Part shown: positions 6,096-43,609 of the stretch, piece after piece
Layout of the letters: each line of letters starts with the position of its first letter
Numbering within the stretch: position 1 is the first letter of the stretch
Assembly (NCBI GenBank): GCA_946965045.2
Contig: OX337233.1
Span: 3,100,001 to 3,164,000 of the forward strand
From: Epithemia pelagica
Taxonomy: Eukaryota; Protista; Bacillariophyta
Direction: 5' to 3'
DNA: 64,000 nt
The notes under the pieces: generated by a model
What the model was told of the DNA's origin: nothing
The model's input: only the letters and a program-made list of their open reading frames with translations
The model's database searches: none
Made by a program: the position numbers and the translations under genes

Positions 6096-7408
6096 ATGTC
6101 TGGCCGACAGAACAAGAAAAGAAAAGAGACCGAAGACCATGACGTGGAGGAGGTGGTAATTACCAAAGAAGACATGAAATTGCTTTGACCCTTGCTCAAC
6201 AAACTTAAGCGACAGAAGAAGACCAAGGAAACTAGCCTATCTGACATTGAGGAAGAAGGCAGCACTTATGAGGAAGAGAAATCCAACATTTCATCCGACT
6301 CCTCTCTGACAAATGTTGCATCAAAACAACATTCTTCTACGTCCAAGCAACGTTCCCCTACTGCTTCAAATAAGGCTGCCACTGTGACTACTGATGGCAC
6401 AAAAAAGAAAAGAGGGAGACAGAAAAAGAGTCCTCCGAAAAAAGATATTCCCAAAAGAAACAGACATCATTCACGGCAGTCATCATCTCCTGAAAAGAAT
6501 GTATCTGCAAAAGACCAAACCAAAGAGACGGCCAAAGATTCCCCCAACCCCCAACCTGGTCCTGAAACGGAAGTAGTACCTGACAATTTTGATGGTAATC
6601 TCAACGAAGAACATAGACTTCGTTTCAACCTTGCTGTCTTTGGCAACTCTTTTACGGACCCTTCCTCGATGGAACCAGTCTCTGCAGGATCAACATCAAG
6701 GAATTCCCAAGTAATGTCTCGGTATCGTCTGCAGCAAGAGATTTACATTCTTCGGCATTGGGAATCTGGAGACCCTAACGCTGCTCCACCAGAAGATGAC
6801 AGTGCACCAGATCCGAGAACGGGCATTGGCTTTAGAAAGTTGCATCCAATTGGGCGTAACACAAAATATCAAAAACGGGAAGTTAGGACTATTCCTTTGG
6901 AGAACAACGAGGAGGAATATGCCTTGTTCCATGAAGGTCGTCATGTTTGTTCTGCAGAGCAAGTTTTCGATATCATCCATGAAAGACACGGACAAACCGG
7001 TCATGCTCTAAACGAAGAAACGACATATAATTTCATCAAAGACGATTATCAAAATATTACTATGAGACAGGTGAAACAGTTTATCAATGGATGCCCTCAA
7101 TGTGTCTTACGGAAAAAAAAACAGGTGCCTCACAAGGGGGCTTCAAAACCCATACGGTCTTTCGGTTTTAGAGACCGCTTCCAAGCTGATCTTATAACAA
7201 TGACTCAGGAAGGAAAAGAAGGGGATAAAGATGTGTACGGAATTGAAATGAAGTTTATCCTCTCCTGCAAAGATCATTTCACCCAGTTCGTCATGTTGGC
7301 GGCCATTCCGAGTAAAAGCACGAAAATAATAGCCCATCACTTGGGTATTATGTATGGAATCATGGGCTTTCCCACGATTTATCAAACTGATAATGGGAAC
7401 GAAGTCTG
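6096..7408 (+). pseudogene. Ginger transposase, N-terminal part (H2C2 zinc finger plus first two DDE aspartates)
   Basis: HERHGQTGH...CPQC zinc finger, RFQADLITM, KDHFTQF and YQTDNGNE. ATG 6096 is in frame with track ORF 6192 but separated by TGA at 6186-6188. The frame is cut at 7408 by the nested element. Confidence 0.85.
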
Positions 7409-7769
7409 CGTCTAAGGGCAGCGTCACGCGCCCCCAAAACGCACACCCCATACGCGCCGTTGGCATGCGCCATTTTTCGTACCCGGTTTTTTTATACGGA
7501 TTTACACCATTTTGACTAATCCCCCCCCACCATCACGCACATACAACATCATACACATTCACGGCGACCCTAGCTTCCACGCACGCACACTCCCATCTTC
7601 CACGCACAGAGAACTTACCTTCCAAGCACACTGACCTCGCCCTCCACGTCCAAAACACTCTGAACACAAAGTACCAACCTCATCGGAACAAGGCATCTAT
7701 ACACCCTCTCCACAGGTGCAATAACACAAGGGCAAACCCCCAATCTCTCCTATCCCATTCTCCAATGAC

Positions 7770-7962
7770 ACCAGCGGAAGCCACTCACCTTTTGCATCCC
7801 ATACTCCGAAAGCACCAGCGGAAGCCACACACCATTAGCATCCCATGCTCCGAAAGCACTGGCAGAAACCACCTACCTTTTGCATCTCAGGCACCGAAAG
7901 CACCGGCAGAAGCCACCCACCTTTTGCATCTCAGACTCCAAAAGCACCAGCAGAAGCCACAC
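7770..7962. repeat. 44-bp tandem repeat, about 4.4 copies, near the left end of the inner element
   Basis: ACC(A/G)GC(G/A)GAAGCCAC...TTTTGCATC..A..CTCCGAAAGC units start at 7770, 7814, 7858, 7902 and 7946. Confidence 0.9.
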
Positions 7963-8049
7963 ACTTATGGTAACTCATTTCACAACACAATCGATACCAT
8001 CCACAGAAGAATGTGAAAACATGCACAGAAGCTAATGAAGAGATACTAT

Positions 8050-10382
8050 TTAAAAAAACCAGAGTCCGTGCTTCCTCCGCTTTTTCTGCTGCGGTTGATC
8101 TTGATCAGCACTGTCCACATATCCCATCCTCTCCCGATGTTTCTTAAGAAGATTCTCCATGAACACATTTTGTCTCTGAAACAGTCCATCAACTGATACA
8201 TATTCTTGATCATCCCTCACCTTCTGCTGCAATTCATCAAGACGATCAAGGCCAATATCACTCATACCACGTCCCTTTTTGTTTGCACAACCTGAATACT
8301 TGTATTGTTCTACTCCATCTGTATCAATGTCCCCATTAATTTGGTGCGCTTGACACCAAGCAGGGTCTTCTTTGTACAACTTTTGTTTGAACTCTTGTCT
8401 GCTCCTCAGAGCCCATGCATCCCATGAATCTTCAAGAGCCAAGAGAATGAAAGCTTCATCACTTGTAGTAAACTTACTCATCGCTTCCTTCCATATTGCT
8501 TGCTTTTGTGCTTCTGGTGTATTAGCTGTAATATCTTGATTAATGATATCTCTCACCATTCCATCTCCATAAACCGACCCCCAAATACTTCAAACATGAA
8601 AACATAAGCATCATTGTCTCCATTCACTCCTCTCATTTGCATCATCTCTTCAAGACTTGGCATAGGACCTAGATTTTCATCGTCAACCAATAACTTAGGG
8701 AATTGTCGCCGAACAATTCCACCACCATGTGTTCTCCATAGATTTAACGAGAAATGTTCTGCCAGGCAGGAAGGCTCATGTTAGAGCAAAACTTTCCACA
8801 AGAATGAGAACAAGATAGCACCAAGACAGTACCAACTTACTCATGAACCTGAACCTTAGCGATTGTAGAACATTTGATCTCTTGCGTCTGAATTCTTTCC
8901 TCAAATGGGGGGAATACCTTTCCCACCACTTTGCCTTAGCCACATCACCAATAATCTTTTCTCGTTCGAAATACGCCTTGAAGTGATCCTTCCCCAAATG
9001 CCATAATCCATTATCATCTGCATCACAATCATCGGCAAGTGAGAAATACTTCACATACCTCCAAGCAACATCAGGCACAAAAGTCTGGAACTCATCCGTA
9101 CGACAAGCTAAGGGTAGATCCTTGTATTTGCTCCTGCTCTTTCTTTGCTGTTCTCTCTTTCTTTCCCTCTTGTCTTCTCTCCTTCTTTCCCTCTCACCAG
9201 ACGTTGCATTAGCCCCAGAACTCTGACCATCACTAGTACCATAGATAGATGATGCAACCATTGAGCTATCGCCTCCGACTTCCATGGCTACAAGAGATGA
9301 TGACGACCAAGAGAGATCAGAAAGTGAGGAAACATCATCCATCCAGAAGTCCACATCTTTTTCGATTGTACATTTCCAAACCCACATCAACCCAGATTAG
9401 AGTTCCACTCTAACCAGTCAATACCGATAGGGCACAAACAAAACAAAGGAAGTACACCTTACTTACAAACGCGACTGACTCCTCCGCCACCACCACCACC
9501 ACCACCCATAACCTCTTCCATAATATTTTCAACATCTTGGTGCGACATTACAGTCACACCACCATTGTCATTAGCTGCGCACTCAATATTATTTGTATCC
9601 ATATGGTGCATCTGTGTTTGCTGTGGTTGGTGAACACCAGCGCCTCCTTGCATCAGAACGCCCCCATTGGGTGGGTATGGGACAGACATCATCTGCTGTT
9701 GTGGGTATCCTTGATGCACCATAATACCAGTTCCTTGTTGTGGATAAATCGTAGATGATGAGGCCGCCGGGAAATGATGATGTTGTTGCCCCCCAAGAGG
9801 AGCTTGGGAATAATTGAACTGTGTATGGACCTGATGTTGTTGTTGCCCTTGAGGAAGAAATGACAACACCGATGGATTTGGTTGCTGGTGAGGATAAGGA
9901 TGGGTATGATTCGGATATGGAGCAACTCCATTCGCATTATAAGGAACTCGCTGACCATGGTCGACTCCACTCATAACAGCAGTATTCTTGTGTTCGGATT
10001 CCACAGGTGCTCCTGTATTAGTAACACCACGGGTTCCTGTACAGCTCATGGTACTACCTTGGTCCTGGGATTCGTTGGATGAAGCTCCCCGTCCTCCTCT
10101 TTCCTGAAATATTACCTGACTCTTTTCAGATACGGATCCTGAATCCTCTTGGTTACGGTCATCATTGCTATTCTTGTTGTTGACATCTCTGATCGTTATT
10201 TCTTCGTCGTCTGTTTCATCATCGGTACTGCTTTCTCCAGCATCTTTGCCACCAGATAAACCATGGAACGCTGAATTCTTACTGTTTTGGTTGTCCTTTT
10301 TATCTTGCTTTGGATCACCACAGCGTTGGCTTCCTTGTTTTCTATTCTTGGTCCCCTGGTTTGTTTCAGAAGGGGGCGACAT
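8050..10382 (-). CDS. Probable multi-exon accessory (second) gene of the inner element, divergent from the transposase
   Basis: Three consecutive minus-strand ORFs (9459-10382, 8776-9390, 8050-8559). The first two end at GTAAG-type donor sequences; a CTGGCAG acceptor near 8765 opens the frame leading into 8050-8559. N-terminus is Q/S-rich; C-terminus has TTSDEAFILLALEDSWDAW. Exact exon borders uncertain. Confidence 0.55.
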
Positions 10383-10821: not shown

Positions 10822-13800
10822 ATGGGCCGTCCTTGTAAACCAAGGTATTTAAGAAATAAACCTTCCGTCATCAAAGATCAATGGGTAGGCGAAGATCCAA
10901 ATGCGAGTACAGGTGGTTCCATTCTTCCATGTCGTAAATGTAGAAATTGTCATGTATTATTCCACGTCTCCGGGATCTTCCAACATGAAAGGGTTTGTAG
11001 CACCAAAAGAGAAAACGGTACTTTGGTCTCACATGCATTGGAGCACGAATCGTCCATGATATGCCACGAAACTGCTGGAGTCGAGAACAATACCTCTCAT
11101 GATAAAGATCAGGGAAATCATTTAGAAAATGGTGGAACCGATGATTGTGCTGTAGGGATTTCAGAAAATGGAGGAACCGACGATGGTGCTGTAGAGATAC
11201 CCTGGGCGGACGATCGAGAAGATGAGGAAAGAGAGGATCTGCAACCCACTACACAAAAACAACCCGTCGTGAGACAGCCATGTCGGAATAGTACAAACAT
11301 TGCTCATTCCTTGCTGTCATCTGAGAATGAGGAAGAATCAGATGAGGACCAAGAAGAAGGACCACCAGCAGATCATGATGATGGGCTCCAACAAACTGTC
11401 GATGACAATGAGGATGTCCAAGGCAAAGGTTCATCCAGTGATGACCATGTTATCGATGAAAACTCAAAAGACAATCCTTTGGAATTTCCAGTGTATCTTG
11501 AACAAAATGGTCTCCAATTTTCCGAAGATGACAAGGCTTTATTGAGGTTGGCCATACTCCTCCGGAATGCTGGGTGTCCGAAGTTCATGTTCGATGCCAT
11601 TTTGGCATGGATTGATTATACTAACGAGTGTTGTGGCTCACGTTTTTTCAATAAAAAACATCCACGGCGAAAGGGATTCATGGCGAAATTCGAAAAAAGA
11701 GGTTTCGATTTCCCCAAACCAAAGATTGTCACCGTCCCAATGGAAGTTACAACCAAAAAGGATATAATCGTTCCAGACAGTGAGAAGTCCGTTGATACCG
11801 TTATATTTGATTTTGTGCATCAACTTCGACGTGTCTTGCAAGATCCTGAAGCCACTTCCAAGGATAAAACAATATTATGTGATGACGACCCGTATCGCCC
11901 TTATACACCGAATAAATGTCTCGAAAACATACAAGATGGCCATGTTTTCCAACGTACCGTACGGAAATACAGACATGACAACGATACTTTCGTTGTTGGT
12001 TTATTGTCTTATATGGATAAGACACACGCGACAGGGGATGGTCGCTTTAATGCGGAACCAGTTGTTATGGTACCTTCATTTTTGACGATGTCTGAAATGC
12101 GAAAACCGAATAGACAAATCATCTTAGGGTTGATCACAGATATGGAACGGAAGTCATCTGCGGCCAAATACATCTTGGATAGGGGGTCCCCCTGTCGGAA
12201 TTATCATGCACAGCTCTCGCGAATACACCAAGCTCTTTTGAAGATACAGAATCGAGGTGGGTTGTGGATGCGATTACGGATCCATGGGATCGAGAAGGTG
12301 GTGAGATTAGTATTACCCGTGATCATGATAAAGGGAGATGCGAAGTCACAAGATAACATCGCAGGAAGATATGCATCTCATCATCAAAGTGTTGGCCGGC
12401 TTGTTTCGCAGTGTGATTGCACACCTCAGGAGTCTAGATACCCATGGTCCACATGCAACTACCTCTTCAAAAACCCTATCCATTTCAGAAGCCTCCGTGT
12501 GCTTGGTTTAGATAAACCATCAGGAAACCCAATAGTTATCGATTCTGGACAACCCGGTATAGATGATCCGAGAGAGGATCCTTGGAGAGAACCTGTGAAC
12601 AATTCCAAGAAAATTTTACATCAGATTGGACAATACCCAGTGAACAACATCTACAACCATTTGTATTTGGGTGAGGGTGTTAATAAAACACATGGGATTT
12701 TTACCGTGGCATGTTGTGATGTATTACATACTTTGAAATCGGGGATCATGAAATATATCATGACTGATTTCTTTGCTCTGATGACAATGAGAGAAAAAGC
12801 CATGTTTGATTTCTTGTACAGCTCTTTCTTCCGAGCCAACCGGCAGTCGGTATTCTCTTATTCTTCTAGTTGGGGGTACCCCAGAACATCCTTCTCTGCA
12901 GGTATCAGTAATGTTACAAAGGTAACAGCCAATGAATGGGTTGGTATTATGTTTGTCTCAGCCGCTTTGTGTGTTTCTGTTCGTGGTCATCTTATTTTCG
13001 CTTCGACTATGGCGGAGAAATGGAAAAAAGTAGTTGCAGAGTGGAAACAATGGTGCAAAGAAGAAGAAGAGAGACGAAAGAAAAAGGAAGAAGAGAAAGA
13101 ACGGAAGAGAAAGAAAAATGAATTAGAAAAAAAAAGAAAAAACGACAACGAATGGGCGCTGGACAAAACAACGTATCCTCTACCAACAATAAACGTCAAC
13201 GACCATCGAAAAAAAACCCGGTTGTACACCACAGTATTGCTGATGCTTCATCCGATTCGGATGAGAATGACTCACCTGTGGATGATAGTTATGAAGAAAT
13301 AACCACAAATATCAACGACAATCTGCCCGGTCATGTACAGGAAAATGAAGATTACCAATATTGTGAACCTGACATTGAGGTACAGGTTACTAGCGAAACA
13401 GTATTCGACGATGACCCTGTGGCATATGCATCGATCTGGGATGTAGGTGAGCGGGAACCATATCTGGATTTCCTCTTCCTGTTTGAGACAATACTCTGTT
13501 TCAACAGCTGGACAAGGATGGATAGATTTTGGGATAGCGACCCACGTTCTCCTGCCGCGAAGGAAACAGCGCGACGATCAGTTGAATCTGTCAAGATAAT
13601 GATGGATGGTATACGGCGGTATGCACCACGATTGGATAAAAAAGGGAAACTGATGTGCAATGGTTGGATGATCCCAAAATACCACAACTTGGTACATATA
13701 GTTCGACAGGTGTCCAATTTCGGCCCGGTTAAAATATCCGACACTGAATCAGAGGAGAGTAACCACAAAGAAATCATCAAACTGAATGCCAAAACAGTAC

Positions 13801-14948
13801 AAAAGCGAGGTAAGGGTGTCTTCGACAGTCAACTTGGTGATAACATGTGGCAGATGCAGGCATGGGATCTGCTCTGTAAAGCATCAGGGATCAAACAAGA
13901 TGACGTGGAGCTACTAAAAAATGGTCAATCTCCAACCATTGTGGCAAGGAAAAAAAGAAGTCAAGTGTATCATAGTCATGAGAATGATGACGAGGACGAT
14001 GAAGAAGATAGATGTAAATTCAAGGGGCGAGGGACAACAATACAAATCCAATTGGTCAGATCTGGACGGACAGAGAGCCCCGTGGTCAAGTGTACTTACA
14101 AGTATATTTCGAAAACAAATACCGGTATGATCCTCCCAAAAGTAATCCTTGACTTTCTGGTGAAACATGCAAGTGCACTCTTCACACAAATGAATATTAT
14201 ACAACAGAATGACACAAGTGATTACATCATGATCCATGGGTGTACAGAGGTCAAATTCAGGGACGAAAACATAGGTGGTATCCGATGTCATCCTAATTAC
14301 CAAAGTGAGGGTCCTTGGAGAGACTGGGTGAAAGCATGGATCCCACGACACCAGCGAACACCATTCACTGACACTGCAACAGGTAATCAGGGAACAGACA
14401 ATATCTTGGTACTCTGTCAGGTTTTATGCTTCATACGCAGACCATGGGAACAACGGGAAAGTGCTGGTCACATGCAAGAACAGGGAAATGATGCTCGTAC
14501 ATCAAGAATCCACCAAGAAAAACCGAGAGATGTCACACATGCTTTACTACGAACCACTTATCGTCGTAGCGACAAGGATAAAGAGAAGTCCTCCGTCCTT
14601 TTCATTCGATGGAGCAAGGCCTTTACCCGGAATTCCCGTGTTCCCGATCTTGTATTGGTTCCTATCACCAATATAGTTGAATTGGTAGGAGTGATCGATG
14701 AAAACCCGGAAATGATCCAACACCGAGATAAGGTACCGGAATACCTGCATTCTGATGCGGAAAGAGAAATATTGCTTGAATATACTTGGAATCACAGGAA
14801 CTATTCCGATATTGTATGGGAGGTACTTCCTGCCAGTAAATGGGCCAATGAGTTCAATGACTCAGCAAGTGATTCGTTGAGAGCAAGATATACATCATCA
14901 TCAGATCCTTCACAAACAACAACAGATCGTAACACTGCTGGATCATGA
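10822..14948 (+). CDS. Plavaka/CMC-type DDE transposase in two overlapping frames (10822-13302 and 13152-14948)
   Basis: Plavaka-like motifs: SYMDKTH...EPV, IMIKGDAKSQDNIAGRY, CCDVLHTLKSG, YPRTSFSAGISNVTKVTANEWVG, then PKYHNLVH...FG...DTESEESNHK (catalytic Glu) in ORF2. The frames differ by -1 and both are open across an A9 run at 13127-13135. Confidence 0.8.
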
Positions 14949-15340: not shown

Positions 15341-16612
15341 ATGTTGAGCAATCCATACAAAAAACCACGCACCATGATGAACCCATACAACAAACGCCGA
15401 AAACCACAAAGTACCAAACCACAAAACAAGGGGGTACTTAGTGAAAGCCGTGGAAACAATCTTCATCCAGAAGAAACCCAGTTCCAAAATGACGACGACA
15501 TCACATTTCTCGAGGATTTATTTCAATGGAGAGAAGAGAAATTCCAGAAAGAGAATAAAGGACATCACAAAAATAACAACAGCAACCACGTCGGTGAATT
15601 GGTACCACGAGTAGTAGATGACAGCTCTCCTGAACCAGGTATATCCGTCGAAGGGCATCACGAGAAAACAGAGCCTCCAAAGAAAACAGAGACTCCTGGT
15701 AACGTTGTTGTACCACCATCCATTCCCGATACAACTATCGTTCCTCATACTAATCCCAAGAAAACGGTCATTCGCAATCCATATGCGGTCAAAAGCCGTA
15801 TCATTGACCCCTCTGTGGTCACTGCGAAATTTAAGACAATACCATTGGCTCCAGAATCACCGAGTTATTCTGATCGAGTTGGTGACCGAGATGCAGACTT
15901 TCACCCTGAAGTGGTTAAGTTCACCAGACTTGCCAACGAGGTATTGGGTTCTACAGAGAATATAGCAGATGCCATTTGTCCAGTTTGTTTGTTTCAAGAT
16001 AACCCAACAACCGATTGGTATTTAACAGGAAAATTCTGGCATCCTTTTGGTACTACTCACCGGTGCCGTGACCATTGTTACGGTTGTGGGGTACATTGTG
16101 ATGTATGCGAAACAGGTGGCAATGAATACAAATGCCGACAATGCATTTTCGACCACGATGGGAAACTCCATGATAAACTTGTGGATCGCACATGTACTTA
16201 TATTCCAATCGTATGTAAGGGTTGCCTCCGACCATGCAATTCAAATGGAGAATGTGTCAGTATTCGGGTCTGTTGGAAGTCCAACAATAAATATTTCATA
16301 TGGCGTTTCTGTATGATCGTTCGAAGAGCCTTACTCTTGAATCAATACAGGCCTGACTTGACTTCTGGGGTAGGAGGGATACCCCGATACACACAGGTAG
16401 TCACAGTCAAAGCAGTTCAACAGATGTACAAGGACCTCCGGTACCCCAATGAATCATCACAATTCTCTAGCCCCTTCATACACATGGGAACAGAGGTCGA
16501 GTGGACAAAATGGTTGGTATCAACGTGCTTCGGTCCCTTTTTCAATTACATGGTGTTATTCCGATACTGTTTCCAAGCCATCATGAACCTCAAAGAGAAT
16601 ACCGCGACTTAA
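15341..16612 (+). CDS. Cys/His-rich cargo protein A of unknown function (423 aa)
   Basis: Intact ATG ORF with many CxxC pairs (CPVC, CYGC, CDVC, CRQC, CKGC). Paralogous to the ORF at 23937. Confidence 0.65.
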   Translation: MLSNPYKKPRTMMNPYNKRRKPQSTKPQNKGVLSESRGNNLHPEETQFQNDDDITFLEDLFQWREEKFQKENKGHHKNNNSNHVGELVPRVVDDSSPEPGISVEGHHEKTEPPKKTETPGNVVVPPSIPDTTIVPHTNPKKTVIRNPYAVKSRIIDPSVVTAKFKTIPLAPESPSYSDRVGDRDADFHPEVVKFTRLANEVLGSTENIADAICPVCLFQDNPTTDWYLTGKFWHPFGTTHRCRDHCYGCGVHCDVCETGGNEYKCRQCIFDHDGKLHDKLVDRTCTYIPIVCKGCLRPCNSNGECVSIRVCWKSNNKYFIWRFCMIVRRALLLNQYRPDLTSGVGGIPRYTQVVTVKAVQQMYKDLRYPNESSQFSSPFIHMGTEVEWTKWLVSTCFGPFFNYMVLFRYCFQAIMNLKENTAT

Positions 16613-16616
16613 ATTA

Positions 16617-24813: not shown

Positions 24814-24852
24814 ATTTGTTTTTCCTTGGTGATGAATGCATCCAGAAAGAAT

Positions 24853-26841
24853 TTATAATGTTCCGCTACGAATGCCTTGAACCGTTTTGGTTATACCGTG
24901 GTCCTCTCTTGTTTTGTTGACAGTTGCATTCATAGACCTGGAACTTACTGCCCAAAACCAACTAATAGTGTGGTTCTTCATGTTCCCATCTGTATGTTGT
25001 CTTTGTGTGTGTATTGACGTTCCATGCCGGATCACACGTCCATCCCATAGAACCGAAACCCCATGAAATAGTTGTATACAAAGACCATGGTATGTAGTAC
25101 CATCATATTCCACCAGAATATTTGGCAAAACAAAGAACCAATTTTGGGAGTCACCTGGGATTGTCTCTGTCCAGATTGCGAATGAAACAGAACCATCGTG
25201 AACATCATAGTGTGTCGTGTTCATGAGGTTCAAACTCAGGGTAATGGCTGAGGTCATACCTCCGACTCTTCCTCCGAATTCACTAGGCATTTCTTCGCCA
25301 GCTGAATCTTCTAGATACCGGAATGTTGGAATCACCCCAGGATATTCGCGTTCACAGAACCTTTTTGCCGCTGTACTTATTTTCGGCAGTATCATCGATA
25401 ATGTCTTGTCCTTTGTAAATAATTTCTCGGAAACGAAAGTAGAACCGTTTCCTCTTGCCGCAGTATTACCAACAGTAGTCATAGATCCTAAGTCTCCCTT
25501 ATTACATCTGGCATTGGCCGCCTTTCTCAGAGACCCAGTACGTGTAAACTCCCTTGCTCTGTGGTGTAATAGGTCCAACAACGTCTGGTCCTTCCGTAAC
25601 AGGGATGTCACTCGAATGTAACTAAGTGACTCTGGTCTCCCATCATTTCGGCGTGTCTGAACAATGAAAGTAATGTTTCCCCGAATACGATGGTCGTATA
25701 CCAGTGGCCTTGGGTGTGTACCGGACGACATTTGCAACCATAGGTTTCGATGCAAAGCACCACTAACATATCTCCGACTCCCTTTCTTATCTGAGTCATT
25801 CCTGTTTATAATCAGCCTTGTTCGATATTGTTCCCGTGACATGTGATGTGTCATCGACTGTTTATTCCCTGGCTTTTCGATCTTTCCCTTGTCATCGAGG
25901 TACACGTCAGGAGGTAAAAGTGGGCTCCCATTCTCCACATCGGACCATTGGTAACATTCCTTCACAGTTTTGTCATTATTAGTAAGTTGTTCACCCCAAT
26001 CTAGACTCCAACAACGATGAATCTTTTTCAAGAATGCATTACTTGCAGGTTGGCCATCTTTGTGTCGCAGACGTAACCAAGACAATGGTAGTGGGACTGA
26101 TGACGATGTGATGTTGGACGACCTTGATAGTTCTTGAAATTGACGCACACATGTATAAAAAACCCCAGCCAAAGGGAAGAGGATAATGATATCTCTGAAG
26201 AGGTGATCATTTTCGTCAAGACATAAATTTTTGTTAGTCCGAATCATCATGACAGGATCTTCGAATATAGAGGACGACACATGTGTTGTCTTTTTCCTGA
26301 TTTCTCTATATCTTGTCCTCGACAAAGTACATTCCAATATGAATGCATTGTGGATCGTTTTAGTTACAAGACCCACCGGGATTTGAGTAACAATCATAGG
26401 ACAACATTCTGGTATAATGTTCGAATGACTGACAACGTCATCTCTTGTCTCCACAACATCATCCATAGCCTTGTTGTATATTTCTGGGATACGTGCAAAG
26501 ACACTCGGGATATCTTTCATATCGACCTTCCGTTGTATCATCTCCTTTTCGAACGACAAACCAAAACAATCTTGATCGTCGTAACTTCCAAAGCAACGCT
26601 GCAGTAGATGCGATAGCATCCTTATTCGATCGATGTCCTTGTCCAAGACAAAGTAGCACATTCTTTCGTGTGCACTTTCGTTCCGATGCGACATGGCGAC
26701 CACTGTTTCACTTATACGTTGCGTTTTCTTCTTTTCGTACTTGGCATAGGTCTCCTGTGTACATGTGAGTCTCGAAATCGTCTGATCCGATGCCATATCT
26801 TCGAAAGTGGGACGAATATGTTTCTTCTTTATGGATGTCAC
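24853..26841 (-). CDS. TET/JBP-like 2OG-Fe(II) dioxygenase (cargo of the inner element)
   Basis: C-terminal double-stranded beta-helix signature: KGDLGSM..G, N-T-T-H-Y-D-V-H-D (HxD), WFFVLPN, LFHGVSVLWDGRVIRHGTS (distal His). The track ORF starts at GTG; first ATG at 26796. Confidence 0.75.
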   Translation of the reverse strand: MTSIKKKHIRPTFEDMASDQTISRLTCTQETYAKYEKKKTQRISETVVAMSHRNESAHERMCYFVLDKDIDRIRMLSHLLQRCFGSYDDQDCFGLSFEKEMIQRKVDMKDIPSVFARIPEIYNKAMDDVVETRDDVVSHSNIIPECCPMIVTQIPVGLVTKTIHNAFILECTLSRTRYREIRKKTTHVSSSIFEDPVMMIRTNKNLCLDENDHLFRDIIILFPLAGVFYTCVRQFQELSRSSNITSSSVPLPLSWLRLRHKDGQPASNAFLKKIHRCWSLDWGEQLTNNDKTVKECYQWSDVENGSPLLPPDVYLDDKGKIEKPGNKQSMTHHMSREQYRTRLIINRNDSDKKGSRRYVSGALHRNLWLQMSSGTHPRPLVYDHRIRGNITFIVQTRRNDGRPESLSYIRVTSLLRKDQTLLDLLHHRAREFTRTGSLRKAANARCNKGDLGSMTTVGNTAARGNGSTFVSEKLFTKDKTLSMILPKISTAAKRFCEREYPGVIPTFRYLEDSAGEEMPSEFGGRVGGMTSAITLSLNLMNTTHYDVHDGSVSFAIWTETIPGDSQNWFFVLPNILVEYDGTTYHGLCIQLFHGVSVLWDGRVIRHGTSIHTQRQHTDGNMKNHTISWFWAVSSRSMNATVNKTREDHGITKTVQGIRSGTL

Positions 26842-27319
26842 CTCCGCTCTAGGATGTGTGCTTGTCGTTTCCGAACTTCTTGTAGTACAAAGACATAGTT
26901 AGTACGCGGATAGAAATGCCAAATACCTGAAACTAGAATGTCTCTTCTTTTGATCGAGAGTACTAATAATATAAGACTGGTTCCATTGTGGGCAGGGATA
27001 TTTCAGAGGGGTCCCAATTTGAGTTCGTTACATAGATCAACTCGTCTTTGAATGCTCTTTCGATTGGTTCAATATATGCCTCGCCAAATTAAGATATACA
27101 CTTTGAAATATTGGACTAAAGTATGGCCGGCAAAATTTTAGTATTCAAAACCCTAATGTGAGATGTGCTAGAAGGTACGTAAAAACGGTACTGCAGTCGC
27201 GCACGTGAATGACAATAGGGGTATATCGCGCGCATACCGCGCAAAACTTTCAAGCTTGATTTCTCGAAAAGTGGATTTTTCAAATATCCCTGGTGACGAT
27301 GGAATCAGTCTTATATAGA

Positions 27320-30300
27320 TCAGACTTGCCTTTTTGCTTCTGTGTTACTGATCGTGACAGTAGAAGATTCAGTTTGGTCTCTCCTATTCTTCTCCTTTTG
27401 TTGTTTTTTACTCATGAAACGGAGAGTTTCCAACGGTACACGACCCCATGCTGTCTCTGGAAATACAGGGACCGGTCTGTAGAGACCACGATGTTCATCT
27501 TTTGACACGCCAACTTCTTCAACTGAACCATCATGTGCATTGGTGTACGTAATCGAAGCAATATCTCCGTTGCACAAAGGGCAACTCTCGTTCATTTCAG
27601 GAGGTGTCGATTTCTGTTTCCCCATAGGAACTTGTTTTTCGGTGGTAAGGACATGACCAAGACACACCCGACAAAACTTGTGCCCGCATCTCTCGATCCG
27701 ACAGTCGTTAGGACGCTGTCCATGGCATATGGCACAATATTGTTCGGAGTCTTCATCATATTCGTCTAGGACGATTGTCTTGTCTTTCTTCGCGATTAAT
27801 TCTGTCTCATGTAGATCGTGTGGTATTAGCTCAGCATGACTATGACCGCATATGGAACAAAATCGATTCTTCACCGAATTCCGGATGAAAGTACATGTTG
27901 GACAATGATAATGAGGACAGTTGGAGGTTTCTTGCCTTGTCCAACTCACGATAGAAAAGGTCCGACTTCTATCCAGATCCTTTTTAAGCAATGAGGTCCC
28001 ACAAGTGGAACAGAGTGCCTCTTTCTGATCTTCATCGTTCAATGTTCGTACCAGATCCAAGAATCGCCGATCTTCGTGAAGTCGTTCGAGCGCCTTGTCC
28101 GCTTCTGTAATCTCTTGTATCACTTTAATGTCCTCGAATCGTTCATCGTCGGAATCCAGCATATCTTCCATTACCTCCCCTCGATCTTTCCCTTCCATTA
28201 TAAACCGGCGACTGCGTTTGATCCTTGGACGTGTATCGTCATTAACGTCCTTGAAACATACACGCAGAGTCGAATCACGTTTCGCTTTATTGATAGCCGT
28301 ACTCACGATATGATTGCAGGCCTTGTGACATTCTCGCCTACACGATGGCAATTCTTGAGCCCATTTCCCCATCATCTGATCACAGGACATATTAGGGGAC
28401 GCCTTTGACAGGATCTCGTCGATCACACATATGATTGATACTTGGGGAAGCGTACACGCACTTGGTGCCACCGGATTCGGATACTTCTTATAAATGAATC
28501 TCCAGTCACATCCAACGAGCTCTTCCTTTATATCAACGCTCAAGAATGATTGGATTTTCTTTTCGTCGTCCAATAGCCTTAGTTTCCGTAGACATCGAAT
28601 CACTGTAGGCCTCCACGAGCGAATATCCCTTGTCGATAATGGATCGAAAATCAACACTTCTCTTTGATGTGCTTGTAAGAGGATTAAGACGGGATAAAAA
28701 GCTTCATACTTGGTAGTGACGACGACCAATGTAGTATCGGAAGACGACGAACTCAAATCCATTGCAGTCATTGTGTCCATTCTCAGACTATCTTCGTCGA
28801 TTTGCTCAAAGCAAACGGACTTGTTGTGCCATTTATGAACCACCAGCACAAGCATCGACCTGAATATGAGGGGAGGGATCCCCTTAAACTTAGTCGTCTC
28901 TTGAGTATTCGTCCGTAGCAAAAGGTTTCGTCTGTACTGGCGATGTGGGACAAAAAGGACGTCCATTTTCCCATTGTCATGTTGTAGAGAACCATTCTTG
29001 TTGGTACAGCAAGCGTAGGTAAAGACAAATCGCAAAACAACTTCATGGATGCTTCCCTTACGTCTAACGGCACTTTCTTTACAGAGATCCCAAGCTTCAT
29101 TGATCGCTGACATCGACTGTTTGAGGGACCAGTTAGCCATATGAATCAAACGGTCGTTAGTGAAAGATGCAAGGTCGTCTGATGGACCAGGTTTATTCTT
29201 GAGAGGAGGTGGTTGCTTTGGTATTCCTTTAGGTTTGTCGCTACCGTGGTCAACATATGATTTACTTTCCAACAGACCCACCTTTGATTGAGAGGAAGAT
29301 TTTTTTGTCGTCGCTTGTTTTCCTTTTTGTGGTTTCTTTTTCAATGCAAGAGTATCAAAAATGGAACTCCGATCCTCCTCGGTCGCTGACAGAGACTGAG
29401 ATTGTGATTTGCTCTCGTTATTTGAAACAGTGAAAATGGTAGAACTTGTTGCACCATCACATTTACTGTCTGACGCTTGTTTACGGCGTTTCCTGTCTTG
29501 AGATCGTTGTTCATGTCGCCCCTTCTGATACTCCTTCGTCTTTGTAGCGTATTCCCGTTCCATCGTCTGGTAATATGAAATTAGAACCGCCAAATTGGAA
29601 TAGTCGTTCGCGGGATACTTAACAGCTCTTGGTATGTCAAAATAAGGACAAAACCAGCAATCAGGAAGTGTAAGGGCTAATGCTTTTTCAACATCGACTC
29701 CTTCCATTTCATAGGAGTCAGATTCCAATACCCGATACACAGCTGCCATATGTTGAACGCTCCAAACCATTTCTCGGACTGGTATTGTTCTGTCTTTCCG
29801 AAACTTCGATCTATCAGACGTCATGTAGTCCAATATTTTTGCAGCCACGACATTAAGCCGTCTCTCCATCGAATACGAGTTGAGGACAATATCAGCGAGC
29901 ATAGGATGGGCTCCAAGAAACACCTTGAGGGATCGAGTAAAGCTTGCGCTCGACTTTGATCTTGTCGTTGACGGGAATTCCTTGTCCCACAGACGAAGTG
30001 CGTCTCCATATAGAGTTTGTTCGAATAGGTCGATTCCTGGTGAAATAAAACTACCAGCTCCGTCACTCTTGTTTCCCTCTTGTTGTTCTTCGATCGTCTC
30101 TACAAGTCTCAGTATCTTCGGGAAACAAACAGCAGCATGCGAGGCGATATCACTGAAAATACTTGATCCACAGCGCAAGAGGGATACGAATATAGTTTCA
30201 CCTCCATATGTAGTGGAGAAATCTGTCCAATTATCAGTGTTGGAATAAACAGAACGATACCACTCGATTGTATATTCATAACATATCAAGTCTGGGAAAT

Positions 30301-30331
30301 ATCGATCGGAATCTTCTACCGAATCAGCCAT
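27320..30331 (-). CDS. 1003-aa cargo protein with a degenerate Ulp1-like region and two C-terminal RING-like zinc fingers
   Basis: CAIC...RCGHKFCRVC...CPLC is a C3HC4 RING; CSTC...CPHYHCPTC...CSIC is a second finger. VLILLQAHQREVLIFDPLS...SACT resembles the Ulp1/C48 core, but no catalytic His is evident. Confidence 0.65.
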   Translation of the reverse strand: MADSVEDSDRYFPDLICYEYTIEWYRSVYSNTDNWTDFSTTYGGETIFVSLLRCGSSIFSDIASHAAVCFPKILRLVETIEEQQEGNKSDGAGSFISPGIDLFEQTLYGDALRLWDKEFPSTTRSKSSASFTRSLKVFLGAHPMLADIVLNSYSMERRLNVVAAKILDYMTSDRSKFRKDRTIPVREMVWSVQHMAAVYRVLESDSYEMEGVDVEKALALTLPDCWFCPYFDIPRAVKYPANDYSNLAVLISYYQTMEREYATKTKEYQKGRHEQRSQDRKRRKQASDSKCDGATSSTIFTVSNNESKSQSQSLSATEEDRSSIFDTLALKKKPQKGKQATTKKSSSQSKVGLLESKSYVDHGSDKPKGIPKQPPPLKNKPGPSDDLASFTNDRLIHMANWSLKQSMSAINEAWDLCKESAVRRKGSIHEVVLRFVFTYACCTNKNGSLQHDNGKMDVLFVPHRQYRRNLLLRTNTQETTKFKGIPPLIFRSMLVLVVHKWHNKSVCFEQIDEDSLRMDTMTAMDLSSSSSDTTLVVVTTKYEAFYPVLILLQAHQREVLIFDPLSTRDIRSWRPTVIRCLRKLRLLDDEKKIQSFLSVDIKEELVGCDWRFIYKKYPNPVAPSACTLPQVSIICVIDEILSKASPNMSCDQMMGKWAQELPSCRRECHKACNHIVSTAINKAKRDSTLRVCFKDVNDDTRPRIKRSRRFIMEGKDRGEVMEDMLDSDDERFEDIKVIQEITEADKALERLHEDRRFLDLVRTLNDEDQKEALCSTCGTSLLKKDLDRSRTFSIVSWTRQETSNCPHYHCPTCTFIRNSVKNRFCSICGHSHAELIPHDLHETELIAKKDKTIVLDEYDEDSEQYCAICHGQRPNDCRIERCGHKFCRVCLGHVLTTEKQVPMGKQKSTPPEMNESCPLCNGDIASITYTNAHDGSVEEVGVSKDEHRGLYRPVPVFPETAWGRVPLETLRFMSKKQQKEKNRRDQTESSTVTISNTEAKRQV

Positions 30332-30439
30332 ATTAGCGTGCGATTCAATCAGCTTGGGGAAGAAACTAGGAGAAATTTTCTTTCGATGCAGGGTTCCGAT
30401 GCAACTTGATACTACCGTTTCTCAAGCTTGCGTGATGGA

Positions 30440-31620
30440 AACCCTGGAGGGTCTTGGTCGATAGGGATGGAGGAGTGAGGGATATGGGTGTACCAACTTG
30501 ATGTCTCGGTCCTTCCAGTCAAGAATCAGAAGCAAATACAACAATCCAATAGGGTCTTGGTCGATAGAGATAGAAGATAGAAGTATGGGGGCGCACCAAC
30601 TTGGTGTCTCGGCCCTTCAACAGAACCACCAATCAAGATATAGCAATCCAATGGGGTCTTCTTGGTCGATGTAGATGAAGGAGGGATGGAGAGGGGTGCA
30701 CCAACTTGGTGTCTCAGCCCTTGTTCCAATCGGGAAGGAGTAGCAACACAGCAATCCAACAGGGTCTTGGTCGGTGGAGATGGAGGAGTGAAAATTGGGT
30801 GCACCAACTTGGTGTCTTGATCCTTGTTCCAATCGAGAAGGAGAGGCAACACAGCAATCCAAAAGGGTCAAGGTCGATGGAGATGGAGGGGTGAAGGAAA
30901 TGGGTGCACCAACTTGGTGTCTCGGCCTTTGTTCCAATCGGGAAGGAGTAGCAACACGGCAATCCAACACGGTCTTGGTCGATGGAGATGGAGGGGTGAA
31001 GGAAATGGGTGCACCAACTTGGTGTCTCGGCCCTTGTTCCAATCGGGAAGGAGTAGCAACACGGCAATCCAACACGGTCTTGGTCGATGGAGATGGAGGG
31101 GTGAAGGAAATGGGTGCACCAACTTGGTGTCTCGGTCCTTGTTCCAATCGAGAAGGAGTAGCAACACAGCAATCCAACAGGGTCTTGGTCGATGGAAAAG
31201 GAGGGGTGAAGGAAATGGGTGCACCAACTTGGTGTCTTGGCCCTTGTTCCAATTGAGAAGGGGTAGCAACACAGCAATCCAACAGGGTCTTGGTCGATGG
31301 AGATGGAGGGGTGAAGGAAGAGGGTGCACCAACTTGGTGTCTCAGCCCTTGTTCCAATCGGGAAGGATTAGCAACACAGCAATCCAACAGGGTCTTGGTT
31401 GATGGAGATGGAGGGGTGAAGGAAGAGGGTGCACCAACTTGGTGATTTTTGCCCTTTGTTCAATAGAATCCTCACCAATCCGACCGTTCAGATCGTTGAA
31501 AATGGTCTTCTGGGATAATAGGAGGGAAGAAGCAGCGGCAATCCAGCAATCCAACCAGTTTTGGTCGATGGAAATTGATGGGAGAATGAAATGGGTGCAC
31601 CAACTTGGTGTCTTCGCCCT
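30440..31620. repeat. 105-bp tandem repeat, about 8 conserved copies plus degenerate flanks
   Basis: GTGCACCAACTTGGTG anchors at 30696, 30799, 30904, 31009, 31114, 31219, 31324 and 31429. Track ORFs repeat every 35 aa. Confidence 0.93.
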
Positions 31621-32228
31621 TTTTCAAACAGAACCACCAATCCAGTCGTTCAGAGCGTTGAAAATTGTCTTGTGGGATGATAGGAGGGAAGAAATAGTTG
31701 CCAAACAGCGATCACACGGTTGGGTTTTCATGGAAACAGAAGAAAATGATTAGTGGGCATATAGGAAAACGACAAAACGAACTCTCACTGTTGTCTTGTC
31801 GACTTGGCTTACCTAGCACCTTTCCAATTTGAAAAAGGAAATGATTCTCTTTGTGTTCGCCTGTTTGTTGTAGCTGTTGTTGTTGTTGTTGCTGTTGTGT
31901 TGTTGTTGTTGTTGTTGTTGCTGCTGCTGTGTGTTTTTTGGGGCGTTGGGGGTTGGTGTGAGTTGGATGAGGCAGTCTATGACTCTATCGTCAAAAAGTG
32001 ATCACAAAAGTGGGAGAGTATATCTTTTGTGTGGTTGTTGTGTGAGGAAAATCTAATTTTCAGCGTTCTTCTGTGATTTTGTGTCCATTGTTCTTCGTAT
32101 GTCACTGTGACGTGATTTGGTGGTGGAGGAGAAATTTGTGGGTCGCTTTTGGAGTTTACGTGCGACTGGAATACTAGGTGTTATATGTGTAGCTAGTAGT
32201 TAGGTATCTAGGCAAAGGTTAGGCTCTG

Positions 32229-32416
32229 TGCACGCGTTTCCACATACAATAAACATGCTCACGCGGGTGTCAACACGTTTCACGCGTTGTCTACACGTTT
32301 CACGCGCATTAACGCGCAATCTGGAGCGCCACGCGCTTCGTACGCGCCAAATGCGCGTGATCCGTGTTCTGGGGGTGCTGCACGCGCCTATTGGGCGTGT
32401 GTCACGCGCCTATTGG
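32229..32416. repeat. Subterminal CACGCG-type short repeats of the inner element
   Basis: About 10 (C/T/A)ACGCG words, including CACGCGCCTATTGG at 32381 and 32403. Related GTCACGCGCC (7423) and TACGCGCC (about 7452) occur at the left end. Confidence 0.7.
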
Positions 32417-32457
32417 TGGAATTCCAGTCACTTATCTTCAAAAAACCTCCTTAGACG

Positions 32458-35400
32458 TGTGGCAATGAGGTAGTGAGGCTTGTGATGGAAAGTAATCCAC
32501 ACATTGACACAATTACAGGACGTCCTCGTACTCCTCGAGAACAAGGTTCCGTGGAGAATGCAAACAACGGCATTCGGAATACTGTCCAATCGATTGTTTC
32601 GGAGGAATGGGCTCGTGGGAATACGGAGTTCAACTGGACAATGGCACTGGGAAGAGCAATGGGAACATTGAACGGTGCTTTTCGACGGACAACAGCAAAT
32701 ACCATTTCGTCATACGAAACTGTCTTTGGAACCAATTCTACTCTCCCAATTCAGAAGGTGTGAAAGGATTATCTTCAACAGAATTGAGAATAGCCGGGAC
32801 CACAGCGGTTGAACGGTGTCTCCGTACCCGCAGTAGCGCCCTCACAGAAAAATATGCGATTTGTGGTGAAATTACTGAAGCCGACATTGAAGACCTTGGA
32901 GACCTTGCATCGCCAAGAGTGCAATACCTAATGCACAACTATAAACAAACACATAAAGAAGCGGCAGATGACAAGTTCATGCTGATACAAAATTCCGATT
33001 GGTCACTGGTACCTGAAGGTCTTAGACCTATATCAGTTCCAGATGAACATGATATGGTCAGAAAAGGTGAAGAAACTGTGGGCGACTTAGATTCTAAACC
33101 AAAAGCTGTTGATTTGGCCCGAAAACAAAAACATACGGCTACGGCGAATCAAGACAGTGAAGTACCTGACGATGACCTTAATTCCAAACCCAAAGCAGTG
33201 GAAAATCAGACATTCCGAAAGGAGATTGAGAGTCGGAAGACACAGGAACTAGTAAGTTCCTCAGATCTGGCGGGACTGTTGTATTGCCAACCCGTATTGG
33301 CAACCCAAAAAGCAGCCCAACAAGAGATTTCAAAACAGAATACCAAGAAATCATCAAATGACGACAACAAGCCAGATGCAAGTTTTGACGCGTCGGACGG
33401 GAAACAAAATGTTTCGAAACAAGGTGTCGACATATCACAACACAAGGTTCATTTATCAAAACTTCGTTCCGACAAGAAGCCAGATGCAAGTTTTGACGCG
33501 TCGGACGGGAAACAAAATGTTTTGAAACAAGGTGTCGACATATCAAAACACAAGGTTGATTTATCAAAACTTCGTTCCGACAAGGAGCCAGATGAAAGTT
33601 TTGAGGCGTCGGACGGGAAACAAAATGTTTTGAAACAAGGTGTCGACATATCAAAACATGATACGACCATTCTGGAACAAAATCCTGATCTGTCAAAACA
33701 AGATCATAACATGTCGAAAGAAGAGAATGACAGCAGATCAAAACACCAGATTTTACGAAACAATGATCAAGAAGACTCTGGTAATGAGTCTGTCATTGTT
33801 GTTGCAACACCCAAGGGAACACCAGTAACGTCCAAACGGAATGACAATAACCCACTCTTGTCAACAGTTCTAAATGTTCTCGTGAATTCCGATGGTTTCA
33901 GGAACGCACAAGCCGCTGACAAGACATTGCAAGTATTCATGAAGTGTGAGATTTGTCCAGATCTTTTTGTGAATAAAGATGTTCTGTTTAACATCCCATC
34001 TGGCGAGTGCTTGGAGCATTATTTCGGAGAAAATTCAAGACAGTGGCTACCACATTCCCTTGTCCACACATTTGGACAACTTGCATCCCATTGGAATCAC
34101 AGTTCTACAGTGATTTTCTATGCCTGTATGCATAACTTGTCGATGGCAACTTTCTTGGAAATTTCGAAAATTATTGGAGAGATCTCACCTGTTCTGAAGG
34201 ATAATGCAAACATTGATGAAATCATATCATTGGGTTTCACTGGTGACCACTACGCAGTCATCCACATCCTTCTGTCAGAGAAGAGAGCAATTGTCTATGA
34301 CGGAATGGTAACAAGTACAATGGACGTTTGGAAAAATGTTGTGAAATATGTTTTGTGGAAATTTGGAGTCCAAGGATTGGACAACATGGATGAACTTATT
34401 GACGAAAGGACCAAACAGAAAACAGAAGGCATCAAAGACCAATGGACAATATCTCGGGATCAAACAATTAGTGGTATTCAACTTGACACACACTCATGTG
34501 GTCCAATCGCAATGCTAGTAATTGCCTGTTTGTTCCAAACACGACAGAGCAAAATGGACGGCGGGACAAGCCTATCTCAATTGCATCCAGCAAATGTGCC
34601 GTCCAAAAACTGGAGGTCAACAGCGTGCACCTTATTCAAAAAGTTTATTGAATTCACATGGACAAATATGTATTCTGTGAAGACTATACCGACAGCGGAT
34701 CAGCAACATGTGATGGACATTCACATGACCACTCAAATCCGCAACTTTCTAAGTGCTGGACAGAGTGTCCAGAAAGATAAGACTCTGCCTACGAACGATT
34801 TTGTGGAGAAGTCGTCTAAGGTGAAGTCTCCTGCAAAGACCATAAAACAAGCACCTGTGGAACTTAAGACAGTTCCACAAGGTACATCAACAAATCAAGG
34901 AAACACCACTGGAAACAACATAGCACAAACAAAACCAGAGCTTCGGCGTTCCCGAAGAAATCGAACAAATAGGTGAGTATCAAACAAGAACGATACTTTT
35001 AGATCTATAAGTGACGCGTCTGAAAAAAAACCTAGTGATTTATGTATTATGGACGACAATGAAATGCGAACTGACCAACGCAATGAAAATGTGAAGCAAA
35101 GAAGGTTTGATCAATCGTATCAAGCGAGTAAGATGATACGAATGAATAGAAGAGCAGGTTTCAAAGTACATAAGGGACAGTCTGTGGCGTTATTTGCAGA
35201 TCCAAGGGACAGAGCAACCCACAGTAGACTTGGTATCCACTGTCTGATAATTGATGTAACCACGGGTGCATATCCTTCTGTACGATTGGTAATTCCTGAA
35301 GGCATCATTGGAGATAAACAGTCAAAAACATCCATTTGGTTTACACATGATAAATACAACTTACTTGATGCCTCATCACCTCTTGGACCAGAACGGCGTT

Positions 35401-43593: not shown

Positions 43594-43609
43594 TGGAAAG
43601 TATATATAG

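Follow-up and report, generated by a model that had tools for sequence, protein, structure and literature searches.

The window, a 64,000-nucleotide stretch of Epithemia pelagica contig OX337233.1, contains two nested DNA transposons, one of them inserted in the integrase gene of the other. The features are, by position in the window:

5209–37695, plus strand: host Ginger-type DNA transposon, 7,436 bp minus the insert, ends TGTTAC..GTAACA
6192–7408, plus strand: N-terminal part of the host integrase, with H2C2 zinc finger and the first two D of the DDE core
7407–7408: left 2-bp target-site duplication TG, from sequence, copies and empty host sites
7409–7417, plus strand: left terminal inverted repeat CGTCTAAGG (9 bp), identical end in 16 genomic copies
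7752–7964: 44-bp subterminal array, about 5 units, found in all fetched copies
8050–8665, minus strand: accessory ORF A, 204 aa in other copies, 1-nt indel here (C run at ~8577)
8776–9390, minus strand: accessory ORF B, 203 aa, no Pfam match
9459–10382, minus strand: accessory ORF C, 305–307 aa, low complexity
10822–14948, plus strand: transposase, two ORFs here, 1,376 aa in intact copies
15341–16612, plus strand: Cys-rich protein 1, 423 aa, no family match
16624–23710: 170-bp satellite, 42 units, non-coding, 11–42 units across family copies
23937–24813, plus strand: Cys-rich protein 2, 291 aa in other copies, 1-nt indel here at ~24487
24853–26878, minus strand: TET/JBP-fold dioxygenase ORF, intact, 647 aa from the first ATG, H529-D531-H591, probable second exon
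26879–27329, minus strand: candidate GC-AG intron, donor GCAAGT, branch TACTAAC, in-frame acceptor
26973–27312: MITE, 340 bp, this copy only, ends AAGACTG..CAGTCTT, AT-rich target, inside the candidate intron
27320–30331, minus strand: RING ORF, 1,003 aa, probable first exon
30448–31750: 105-bp subterminal array, about 10 units, 9–32 blast pieces in other copies
32449–32457, minus strand: right terminal inverted repeat CCTTAGACG (9 bp), from sequence and genomic right ends
32458–32459: right 2-bp target-site duplication TG, from sequence, copies and empty host sites
32460–34976, plus strand: C-terminal part of the host integrase, with Ulp1-like domain
35049–35732, plus strand: host ORF, weak CXC (TCR) match
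35663–37477, minus strand: TET-like ORF of the host Ginger itself, 604 aa, 31% identical to the cargo enzyme over 613 aa

The inner element occupies positions 7409–32457 (25,049 bp, or 25,051 bp including one duplication), and both 9-bp repeats and the TG pair were located, as expected from the first-pass annotation, which had described a 25-kb element with exact ends. At least 16 left and at least 15 right ends of the family are present in the genome. The search for further copies with different 2-bp duplications, proposed in that annotation, was successful: the flanking dinucleotides are identical in 11 of 12 left-right end pairs (chance about 1e-12) and of seven kinds among these 11, the flanks of the remaining pair being unmatched, and TA accounts for 5 of the 16 left flanks. 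Paired copies span 7.9–26.1 kb and are ~99% identical (<1% diverged). Metagenomes scanned for the terminal pattern of the element returned no match. The 25-kb cut-and-paste transposon is real and has recently multiplied.

The insertion had been placed in the integrase core of a Ginger-type gene, and two empty host copies (C13:2702876 and C18:2857601, 97–98% identical) run through the junction as predicted, both having one TG at the site and an open frame, and reading DNGNEVCGNEVV. The host integrase has an additional 1-nt indel at ~32733 compared with an empty copy. The host shares with Ginger (Bao et al. 2010, PMC2836005) the TGTNR ends, terminal inverted repeats, 4-bp duplication (here GATT at 5205–5208 and 37696–37699), H2C2 finger with integrase core, C-terminal Ulp1 domain and a size of about 7 kb. 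It differs in its imperfect inverted repeat of just ~26 bp, compared with 40–270 bp in Ginger1, and in its AT-rich target, GATT, unlike the CCGG/CCGT of Ginger1. A provirus or LTR element is ruled out by the inverted repeats, the 4-bp duplication, the 7.4-kb length and the lack of a reverse transcriptase ORF. The TET-like gene of this host is absent among the 11 TET-carrying lineages of PMC12730594.

The transposase reported earlier for the inner element is present, with the correction that it is frameshifted into two ORFs in this copy which, as assembled, would thus be mobile only with the help of another copy. Among 85 homologues, the catalytic residues D399, D506 and E979 are 98–100% conserved and those of the H(3)H motif 97% (H955) and 94% (H959); CxC is present in about 40% of the homologues. 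The invariant C531 and C545 lie 13 residues apart, unlike the C(2)C motif after the second D of the CMCT clade. A fold search with a model covering the part up to the second D and the insertion domain retrieved RAG1/Transib proteins as its top 46 matches, RAG1 being the best (E 1e-5). This transposase had no direct match to the Pfam Plavaka model PF18759. Of 42 aligned homologues, 25 did match that model at E<=0.1, the best at 8e-15 and some above the cut-off; Transposase_21 was matched by none of them. Scans of the genome with the Plavaka and Transposase_21 models gave no matches, the latter scan being uninformative because its control likewise gave none. In a tree of homologues the transposase falls in its own supported subclade of 9. 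The 2-bp duplication lies within the 2–5 bp of the CMCT clade, and the ends are CG..CG here and CA..TG in sister families, which begin CATCTAAGG. These data support assignment of the transposase to the CMCT clade, nearest Plavaka; the earlier description as a CMC/Plavaka-type transposon agrees with the copies, duplications, empty sites, DDE and H(3)H motifs, RAG1 fold and Plavaka-matching homologues. The termini are indeed non-CACTA, as had been stated, but they depart from the clade rule by a single base (CG for CA) and are hardly exotic, since the sister families have CATCT ends and a relative in Fragilaria crotonensis CATCA..TGATG.

PlavakaA needs TGT..ACA ends, not present here, and ESTA, with its TA-specific duplication, is contradicted by the seven dinucleotides among 11 pairs. 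EnSpm/CACTA also belongs to the CMCT clade and shares the RAG1-like fold, short inverted repeats and subterminal repeats; it was rejected because the element has no CACTA/CAC end, a 2-bp rather than 3-bp duplication and no Transposase_21 match. PlavakaB (Kojima 2025, PMC12730594) shares varied 2-bp duplications, short C-initial inverted repeats, a DDE transposase with 2 Cys and 3 His and, in some families, TET/JBP cargo. However, fungal PlavakaB elements are about 6–9 kb with CATCA..TGATG ends, whereas the elements described here reach 26 kb with CGTCT..AGACG ends, have C(13)C instead of C(2)C and are missed by the Pfam Plavaka model; their cargo enzyme has HxD without the 2-oxoglutarate (2OG) Arg, the fungal Plavaka type HxE.

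All the contents named earlier (Cys-rich paralogs, 7-kb satellite, TET/JBP-like gene, RING protein and 105-bp array) were found, the accessory gene upstream proving to be three minus-strand ORFs instead of one. These ORFs A–C may be exons of a single gene; homologues of ORF A occur in sister elements and in the Fragilaria element. The two Cys-rich proteins share 29% identity over 136 aa (E 2e-12). In the 170-bp satellite neither an open frame in register nor a stable hairpin (z 0.08) was found, and it resembles neither the element ends nor the 105-bp unit nor a 175-bp unit of Fragilaria. Among the matches listed it is confined to family copies, plus diverged single pieces in sister elements, and a captured centromeric satellite was rejected because no unit lies outside element copies among these matches. 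The array probably arose within the element, where a unit present once in the sisters would have been amplified.

The RING and TET-like ORFs were analysed separately; they are probably one spliced gene, with a candidate intron of 451 nt here versus 107 nt in other copies. The RING ORF carries a C3HC4 RING finger (residues 866–920) and a second Cys-rich finger (774–828). The dioxygenase had no direct Pfam match and, searched by sequence against solved structures, gave chance matches only, CMD1 being unmatched at this level. Its four best structural matches are TET2, NgTET1, CcTET and CMD1 (Z 12.7–14.8), and a feature search returned 25 Tet_JBP clusters at 0.96–0.97. The HxD..H iron triad (H529, D531, H591) is invariant in the enzyme family, while the canonical 2OG Arg is missing, with no conserved Arg before the last strand. 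The gene was thus rightly called TET/JBP-like, given its double-stranded beta-helix fold nearest TET/JBP and its triad. Its family is found in the unrelated Ginger host too; a recent transfer between the two was rejected, since the proteins are 31% identical and each has closer relatives elsewhere.

Across nine copies, dN/dS is about 0.35 for the transposase, 0.29 for the TET-like ORF (p 2e-6) and 0.43 for the RING ORF; the TET-like ORF is therefore as constrained as the transposase, and the RING ORF is also under significant purifying selection. Constraint on the accessory and Cys-rich ORFs is not significant within the family. Transitions affect 9.7% of CpG sites versus 2.3% of other C/G in the copies, a 4-fold excess (p 2e-24). 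The corresponding values in the host Ginger are 7.4% and 1.6%, a scar of about the same strength, so that protection by the enzyme, if any, would be partial. The TET-like gene is moreover dispensable, since a complete 12.8-kb sister element (L061) lacks it; internally deleted family copies without it also exist (C17b). Transposable elements of diatoms are CG-methylated and silenced by DNMT5 (PMC9998398).

We consider it likely that the locus holds a member of a young, giant, CMCT-clade, Plavaka-like cut-and-paste family in a diatom, whose TET-like cargo has an anti-silencing role. The RAG1-fold DDE transposase of intact copies would recognise the 9-bp ends and subterminal sequence, excise the 8–26 kb unit and reinsert it with a 2-bp stagger at varied dinucleotides, by the chemistry expected of its family. 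This copy would have entered the catalytic core of the Ginger-type transposon and later received the MITE, and the cargo would pass on with the element and be maintained by selection. The host would methylate CpG in element copies, and the spliced RING-finger/TET-like iron dioxygenase would modify the 5-methylcytosine of the element, incompletely weakening silencing. The cargo enzyme thus probably helps the element to resist silencing.

It is possible, if on balance doubtful, that the enzyme is CMD1-like, vitamin C replacing 2OG and 5mC being converted to a glyceryl-modified base, which would refine this explanation and not compete with it. Pocket residues of CMD1 (PMC7854593) recur by spacing from the iron-binding His, namely D+2, D+5 (the 5mC reader), W+13 (the Trp blocking the 2OG arginine site), F+26, S/T-8 and a T two after the second His; position +13 is W or F in 20 of 21 family members, none of the Arg before the last strand is conserved, and, of the vitamin C pocket residues (T337, W358, F371, T399, S414, R244 and H249, the last two outside the mapping), four match by spacing. 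CMD1 is itself carried by an 18.4-kb DNA transposon (10.1101/2022.06.16.496473). However, the mapping is based on residue spacing and not on superposition, fold searches place TET2 and NgTET1 slightly above CMD1, V342 of CMD1 is Asn in the cargo enzyme and R418 has no counterpart, the His-His gap is 62 versus 52, and a match at sequence level is lacking. The dioxygenase could instead act on a different base, turning thymine into 5-hydroxymethyluracil or removing 6mA, or be an inactive 5mC-binding adaptor bringing the RING ligase to methylated chromatin, which we regard as distinctly unlikely: TET/JBP members active on T and 6mA are known (PMC12730594), and the missing co-substrate Arg, the probable RING fusion and the persisting CpG scar would fit, but family-wide there is little or no variation in the iron triad and in D+5, the residue by which CMD1 selects cytosine.

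That the cargo genes are chance-captured passengers of no benefit to the element is very unlikely. The lack of significant constraint on the accessory and Cys-rich ORFs and the copies without the TET-like gene (C17b, L061) agree with such an origin, whereas purifying selection on the TET-like and RING ORFs, and the occurrence of this enzyme family both in another diatom and, at this locus, in transposons of two unrelated types, speak against it; it is largely refuted for these two ORFs and for now stands for the small ones. An assembly chimera of repeats is extremely improbable. The first-pass annotation had proposed a check of spanning long reads; reads or contigs bridging the junction of this copy were not seen, three public runs give the empty host site only, and the three ORF breaks are single-base homopolymer indels typical of long-read errors. 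Yet the join is base-exact, a mis-join would not produce the 2-bp duplication, and ten other copies follow the same rule at other sites; the runs differ from the window at many sites, which points to another strain or to collapsed copies.

Returning to the Plavaka-like family with TET-like cargo, its giant, cargo-carrying nature stands as first described, but its size and cargo are less unprecedented than implied, because red algae have giant Plavaka of 17–19 kb with oxygenase cargo and tandem arrays (10.1101/2025.02.11.637652) and fungi have Plavaka that carry TET genes (PMC12730594). The Plavaka of Bostrychia moritziana (10.1101/2025.02.11.637652) resembles the element in its 17–19 kb, its several accessory genes, its putative 2OG-type oxygenase beside tandem arrays and its cargo common to transposon superfamilies. 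Its cargo is PAG1-3 (methylase/SET, ParB-like DNA binder and oxygenase) and its copies are mostly old, whereas the element has RING/TET-like and Cys-rich genes, a 7-kb 170-bp satellite and copies <1% diverged. DNA-1_cRei of Chlamydomonas (10.1101/2022.06.16.496473, PMC7854593) is likewise a large DNA transposon (18.4 kb) with a TET-like gene, CMD1, which resembles the cargo enzyme in having a Trp in the pocket and no functional 2OG arginine site; it differs by 8-bp duplications, 67-bp inverted repeats and no recognisable transposase. In the literature we found no description of diatom Plavaka or TET/JBP transposons; the undescribed part is the diatom lineage and its enzyme type.

In Fragilaria crotonensis the same enzyme family adjoins a Plavaka-like transposase at three loci. 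One relative (L069:5028-15055) has the PlavakaB ends CATCA..TGATG and the duplication TG, and the transposase/TET-like pairing lies beside a 175-bp array, echoing the 170-bp satellite of the element. One could speculate, although we think it unlikely, that several unrelated kinds of transposon in diatoms have in common a distinct family of TET-like enzymes, which would turn 5mC into an unusual base with vitamin C, or some co-substrate other than 2OG, and that in Plavaka-like elements the enzyme is RING-fused and targeted to its own element via a nucleosome-length (170–175 bp) array. If true, these elements would carry a complete anti-silencing module of their own, and diatoms would have a new DNA modification.

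The idea that transposon-borne TETs undo their own silencing is long-standing and, to our knowledge, untested. As diatoms can be manipulated genetically and use CG methylation by DNMT5 to silence transposons, the idea becomes directly testable in them. TET-carrying DNA transposons, known from fungi and from green and red algae, now extend to diatoms: two unrelated carriers are nested here in a single locus, and a second diatom species adds a further case. If the pocket is CMD1-like, a base derived from vitamin C might also occur outside Chlamydomonas. These elements are among the largest cut-and-paste transposons with just 9-bp ends; they also disseminate a satellite, and the genes they carry are prone to mis-annotation as host genes. 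The 340-bp MITE had been overlooked in the first-pass annotation; about 12 near-full copies of it exist elsewhere, one of them identical.

The 25-kb element is real, and it entered its host by cut-and-paste insertion with a 2-bp stagger. The left junction (window 7401-7417) reads ...GAAGTC TG CGTCTAAGG and the right junction (window 32449-32467) CCTTAGACG TG TGGCAATG, with an inverted repeat of exactly 9 bp. The first 342 and last 358 bases have 16 and 15 full or near-full matches, respectively, in the 60.5-Mb genome (95–99% identity), from which 12 left and right ends could be paired on one contig and strand, spanning 7.9–26.1 kb. The first-pass annotation had anticipated other copies with differing 2-bp duplications, and the flanking dinucleotide is indeed identical in 11 of the 12 pairs (TG and TC twice each, TA three times, AA, CA, CG and AG once), an agreement expected by chance with a probability of ~1e-12. 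The remaining pair, a full-length copy at G000:C17:1183549-1208880, is flanked by TG and CA and may be a recombinant of two insertions. Also as anticipated, empty copies of the Ginger-type host read through the junction: those at C13:2702876 and C18:2857601 (97–98% identical) have a single TG at the insertion site and the open frame DNGNEVCGNEVV, and three more distant relatives read through as well. The Ginger-type element was in place before the 25-kb element arrived. In three public runs from this organism only the empty host site was present, with no bridging read seen, so the insertion is absent from, or unassembled in, those samples.

The window copy was compared with eight others read along their whole length, which are colinear with it and 98–99% identical. 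Size variation comes from the 170-bp satellite (11–42 units per copy, missing from two deleted copies), the 105-bp array, internal deletions, two private insertions and a 1,980-bp transposase triplication; the latter lies in frame within the transposase gene of the copy at G000:C3:472580-498722 (L058-L060) and produces a 2,696-aa open frame. The copies diverge by 0.3–0.8% from the family consensus, which identifies a young family that spread recently. A 340-bp MITE (window 26973-27312), with about a dozen near-identical copies elsewhere, is private to the window copy, giving a nest of three elements, with the MITE inside the Plavaka-like element and the latter inside Ginger. Accessory ORF A and Cys-rich ORF 2 of the window copy are broken at ~8577 and ~24487 by single-base homopolymer indels, which could be assembly errors. 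Another copy, G000:C3:3780182-3802927, contains a foldback insertion, a near-perfect palindrome of 421 bp, just before the start codon of the TET-like gene (element position ~16272-16692). Two same-orientation copies lie 3.2 kb apart near the end of contig C20 (~41000-62267 and 65427 onward); their outer ends were not found there.

The transposase is a single 1,376-aa ORF in copies C16a and C3a, while in the window copy a run at ~13126 is one A short, separating two aspartates from the glutamate. Of 1.8 billion representatives searched, 1,155 were relatives. Among 85 full-length sequences D399, D506 and E979 are 98–100% conserved, accompanied by H636, H955, H959 and two invariant cysteines, C531 and C545. 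The top 46 structural matches of the core model (pLDDT 86) are RAG1, RAG1L and Transib. Pfam Plavaka is matched by 25 of 42 aligned homologues and Transposase_21 by none, the transposase of the 25-kb family itself matching neither; in a tree among unnamed homologues it forms its own subclade. Plavaka sits in the CMCT clade, characterized mostly by CA..TG ends and 2–5 bp duplications, the ends of PlavakaB being CATCA..TGATG (Kojima 2025, PMC12730594). CATCTAAGG begins both a sister end at C13:2880534 and a complete 12.8-kb sister element on a metagenome contig (L061:6896-19666, ENA ERZ21939226), which is flanked by a TG duplication. The CG start of the 25-kb family therefore differs by one base and would most simply have arisen from CA. 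The termini had been described as non-CACTA; this holds for the CG start of the window copy, but they are only one base away from the CA start of the sister families. In its workings the element resembles a Plavaka, and it is a member of CMCT; formal Plavaka membership is likely, the comparison having covered unnamed homologues. The metagenome sister has the two Cys-rich genes and, of the RING ORF, the N-terminal part; it lacks the TET-like gene and has the satellite unit as a 78-bp piece only. Starting from a unit held once by sisters, the satellite would have grown through slippage or unequal exchange.

The TET-like ORF (window 24853-26796) has no Pfam match. The model of its C-terminal domain (pLDDT 81) best matches TET2 (Z 14.8), NgTET1 (14.4), CcTET (13.3) and CMD1 (12.7), and feature and shape searches retrieved Tet_JBP clusters and one unnamed diatom cluster. 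The iron triad H529-D531-H591 is invariant in the enzyme family, and no conserved Arg was found at its 2-oxoglutarate site. In this family, positions +5, +13, +26 and -8 from the first His are occupied by D, W (or F), F and S, respectively, and T follows two positions past the second His; by spacing comparison, not superposition, CMD1 has equivalents at matching offsets (D350, W358, F371, T337 and T399), whereas its V342 and R418 are unmatched in the cargo enzyme. W358 is the CMD1 residue that excludes 2OG (PMC7854593). A candidate intron separates the RING ORF from the TET-like ORF in all eight copies retaining the region and in one metagenome copy. Its donor is of the GC type (AG/GCAAGT), its branch site reads TACTAAC, and its acceptor, which is in frame, lies 107 nt from the donor; the MITE of the window copy falls within it. 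The RING and TET-like ORFs probably encode, as separate exons, a single protein.

Both are co-inherited with the element and under selection. Based on distinct changes among the nine copies and context-weighted expectations, dN/dS is ~0.29 for the TET-like ORF (p 2e-6), ~0.43 for the RING ORF (p 6e-5) and ~0.35 for the transposase; constraint on the small ORFs was not significant. The copies are also hypermutated at CpG, with transitions at 9.7% of CpG positions vs 2.3% of other C/G (p 2e-24), an excess found within the 170-bp satellite as well, and the host Ginger has the same scar. This pattern suggests that the element copies have been CpG-methylated. In Phaeodactylum, transposons are silenced by DNMT5 CG methylation (PMC9998398); together with the scar, this indicates that a pressure for such an enzyme to counter exists. 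The enzyme would quite probably act on 5mC of the element; that it would do so with CMD1-like chemistry seems rather unlikely, and that the array would target the enzyme is more doubtful still. Any protection is partial at best. Similar elements have been reported elsewhere: TET-carrying Plavaka in fungi (PMC12730594), giant 17–19 kb Plavaka with an oxygenase beside tandem arrays in red algae (10.1101/2025.02.11.637652) and an 18.4-kb transposon carrying CMD1 in Chlamydomonas (10.1101/2022.06.16.496473); a literature search on diatoms found no paper describing such elements.

The genome holds 58 enzyme-domain matches at roughly 50 loci, belonging to the 25-kb family, to a 60%-identical sister family, where the domain lies within ~1,776-codon frames, and to Ginger-type elements. 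The host (window 5209-37695; 7,436 bp when empty), for which Ginger (PMC2836005) served as comparison, has TGTTAC ends, a GATT duplication and an H2C2-integrase-Ulp1 organization, and its own TET-like copy is 31% identical to the cargo enzyme. A 1.35-kb internally deleted host derivative keeps both ends (G000:C8:789156-790507), and at least six diverged Ginger-type TET-carrying copies cluster within 90 kb at G000:C5:846800-932600. Named members of the enzyme family come from the diatom Fragilaria crotonensis (GCA_022925895.1), in three element copies that are 93–99% identical:

L069:5028-15055, Fragilaria crotonensis element
L067:6061-15535, Fragilaria crotonensis element
L068:6532-14134, Fragilaria crotonensis element

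At all three loci the TET-like gene and a Plavaka-like transposase are arranged tail to tail, and two of the loci have an ORF A homologue. The L069 copy, of 10,028 bp, is complete, with exact PlavakaB ends, CATCA..TGATG, and a TG duplication. A 175-bp tandem array adjoins the TET-like gene; sequence comparison found no relationship between its unit and the 170-bp unit. The Fragilaria members are also the chief ground for regarding the source organism of the window as a probable diatom.

Elsewhere in the window, a 108-bp in-frame repeat (33362-33658; 36 aa, ~3 units) lies in the linker between the host integrase and Ulp1 domains. To the left of the host lie an element of 1.56 kb whose subterminal units measure 71 bp (2000-3563; at least six relatives at ~86%) and a 225-bp repeat (3561-3785; >25 copies at 99%), often paired 7–10 kb apart in an LTR-like manner. 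Genes of the host organism at 23-739, 47456-49477, 50888-51838 and 53601-56048 comprise two kinase-like ORFs, a sulfotransferase and a bromodomain protein. Stretches within 37750-44000 are similar to 1-2000 and to further places in the window, which suggests a local gene cluster with duplications.
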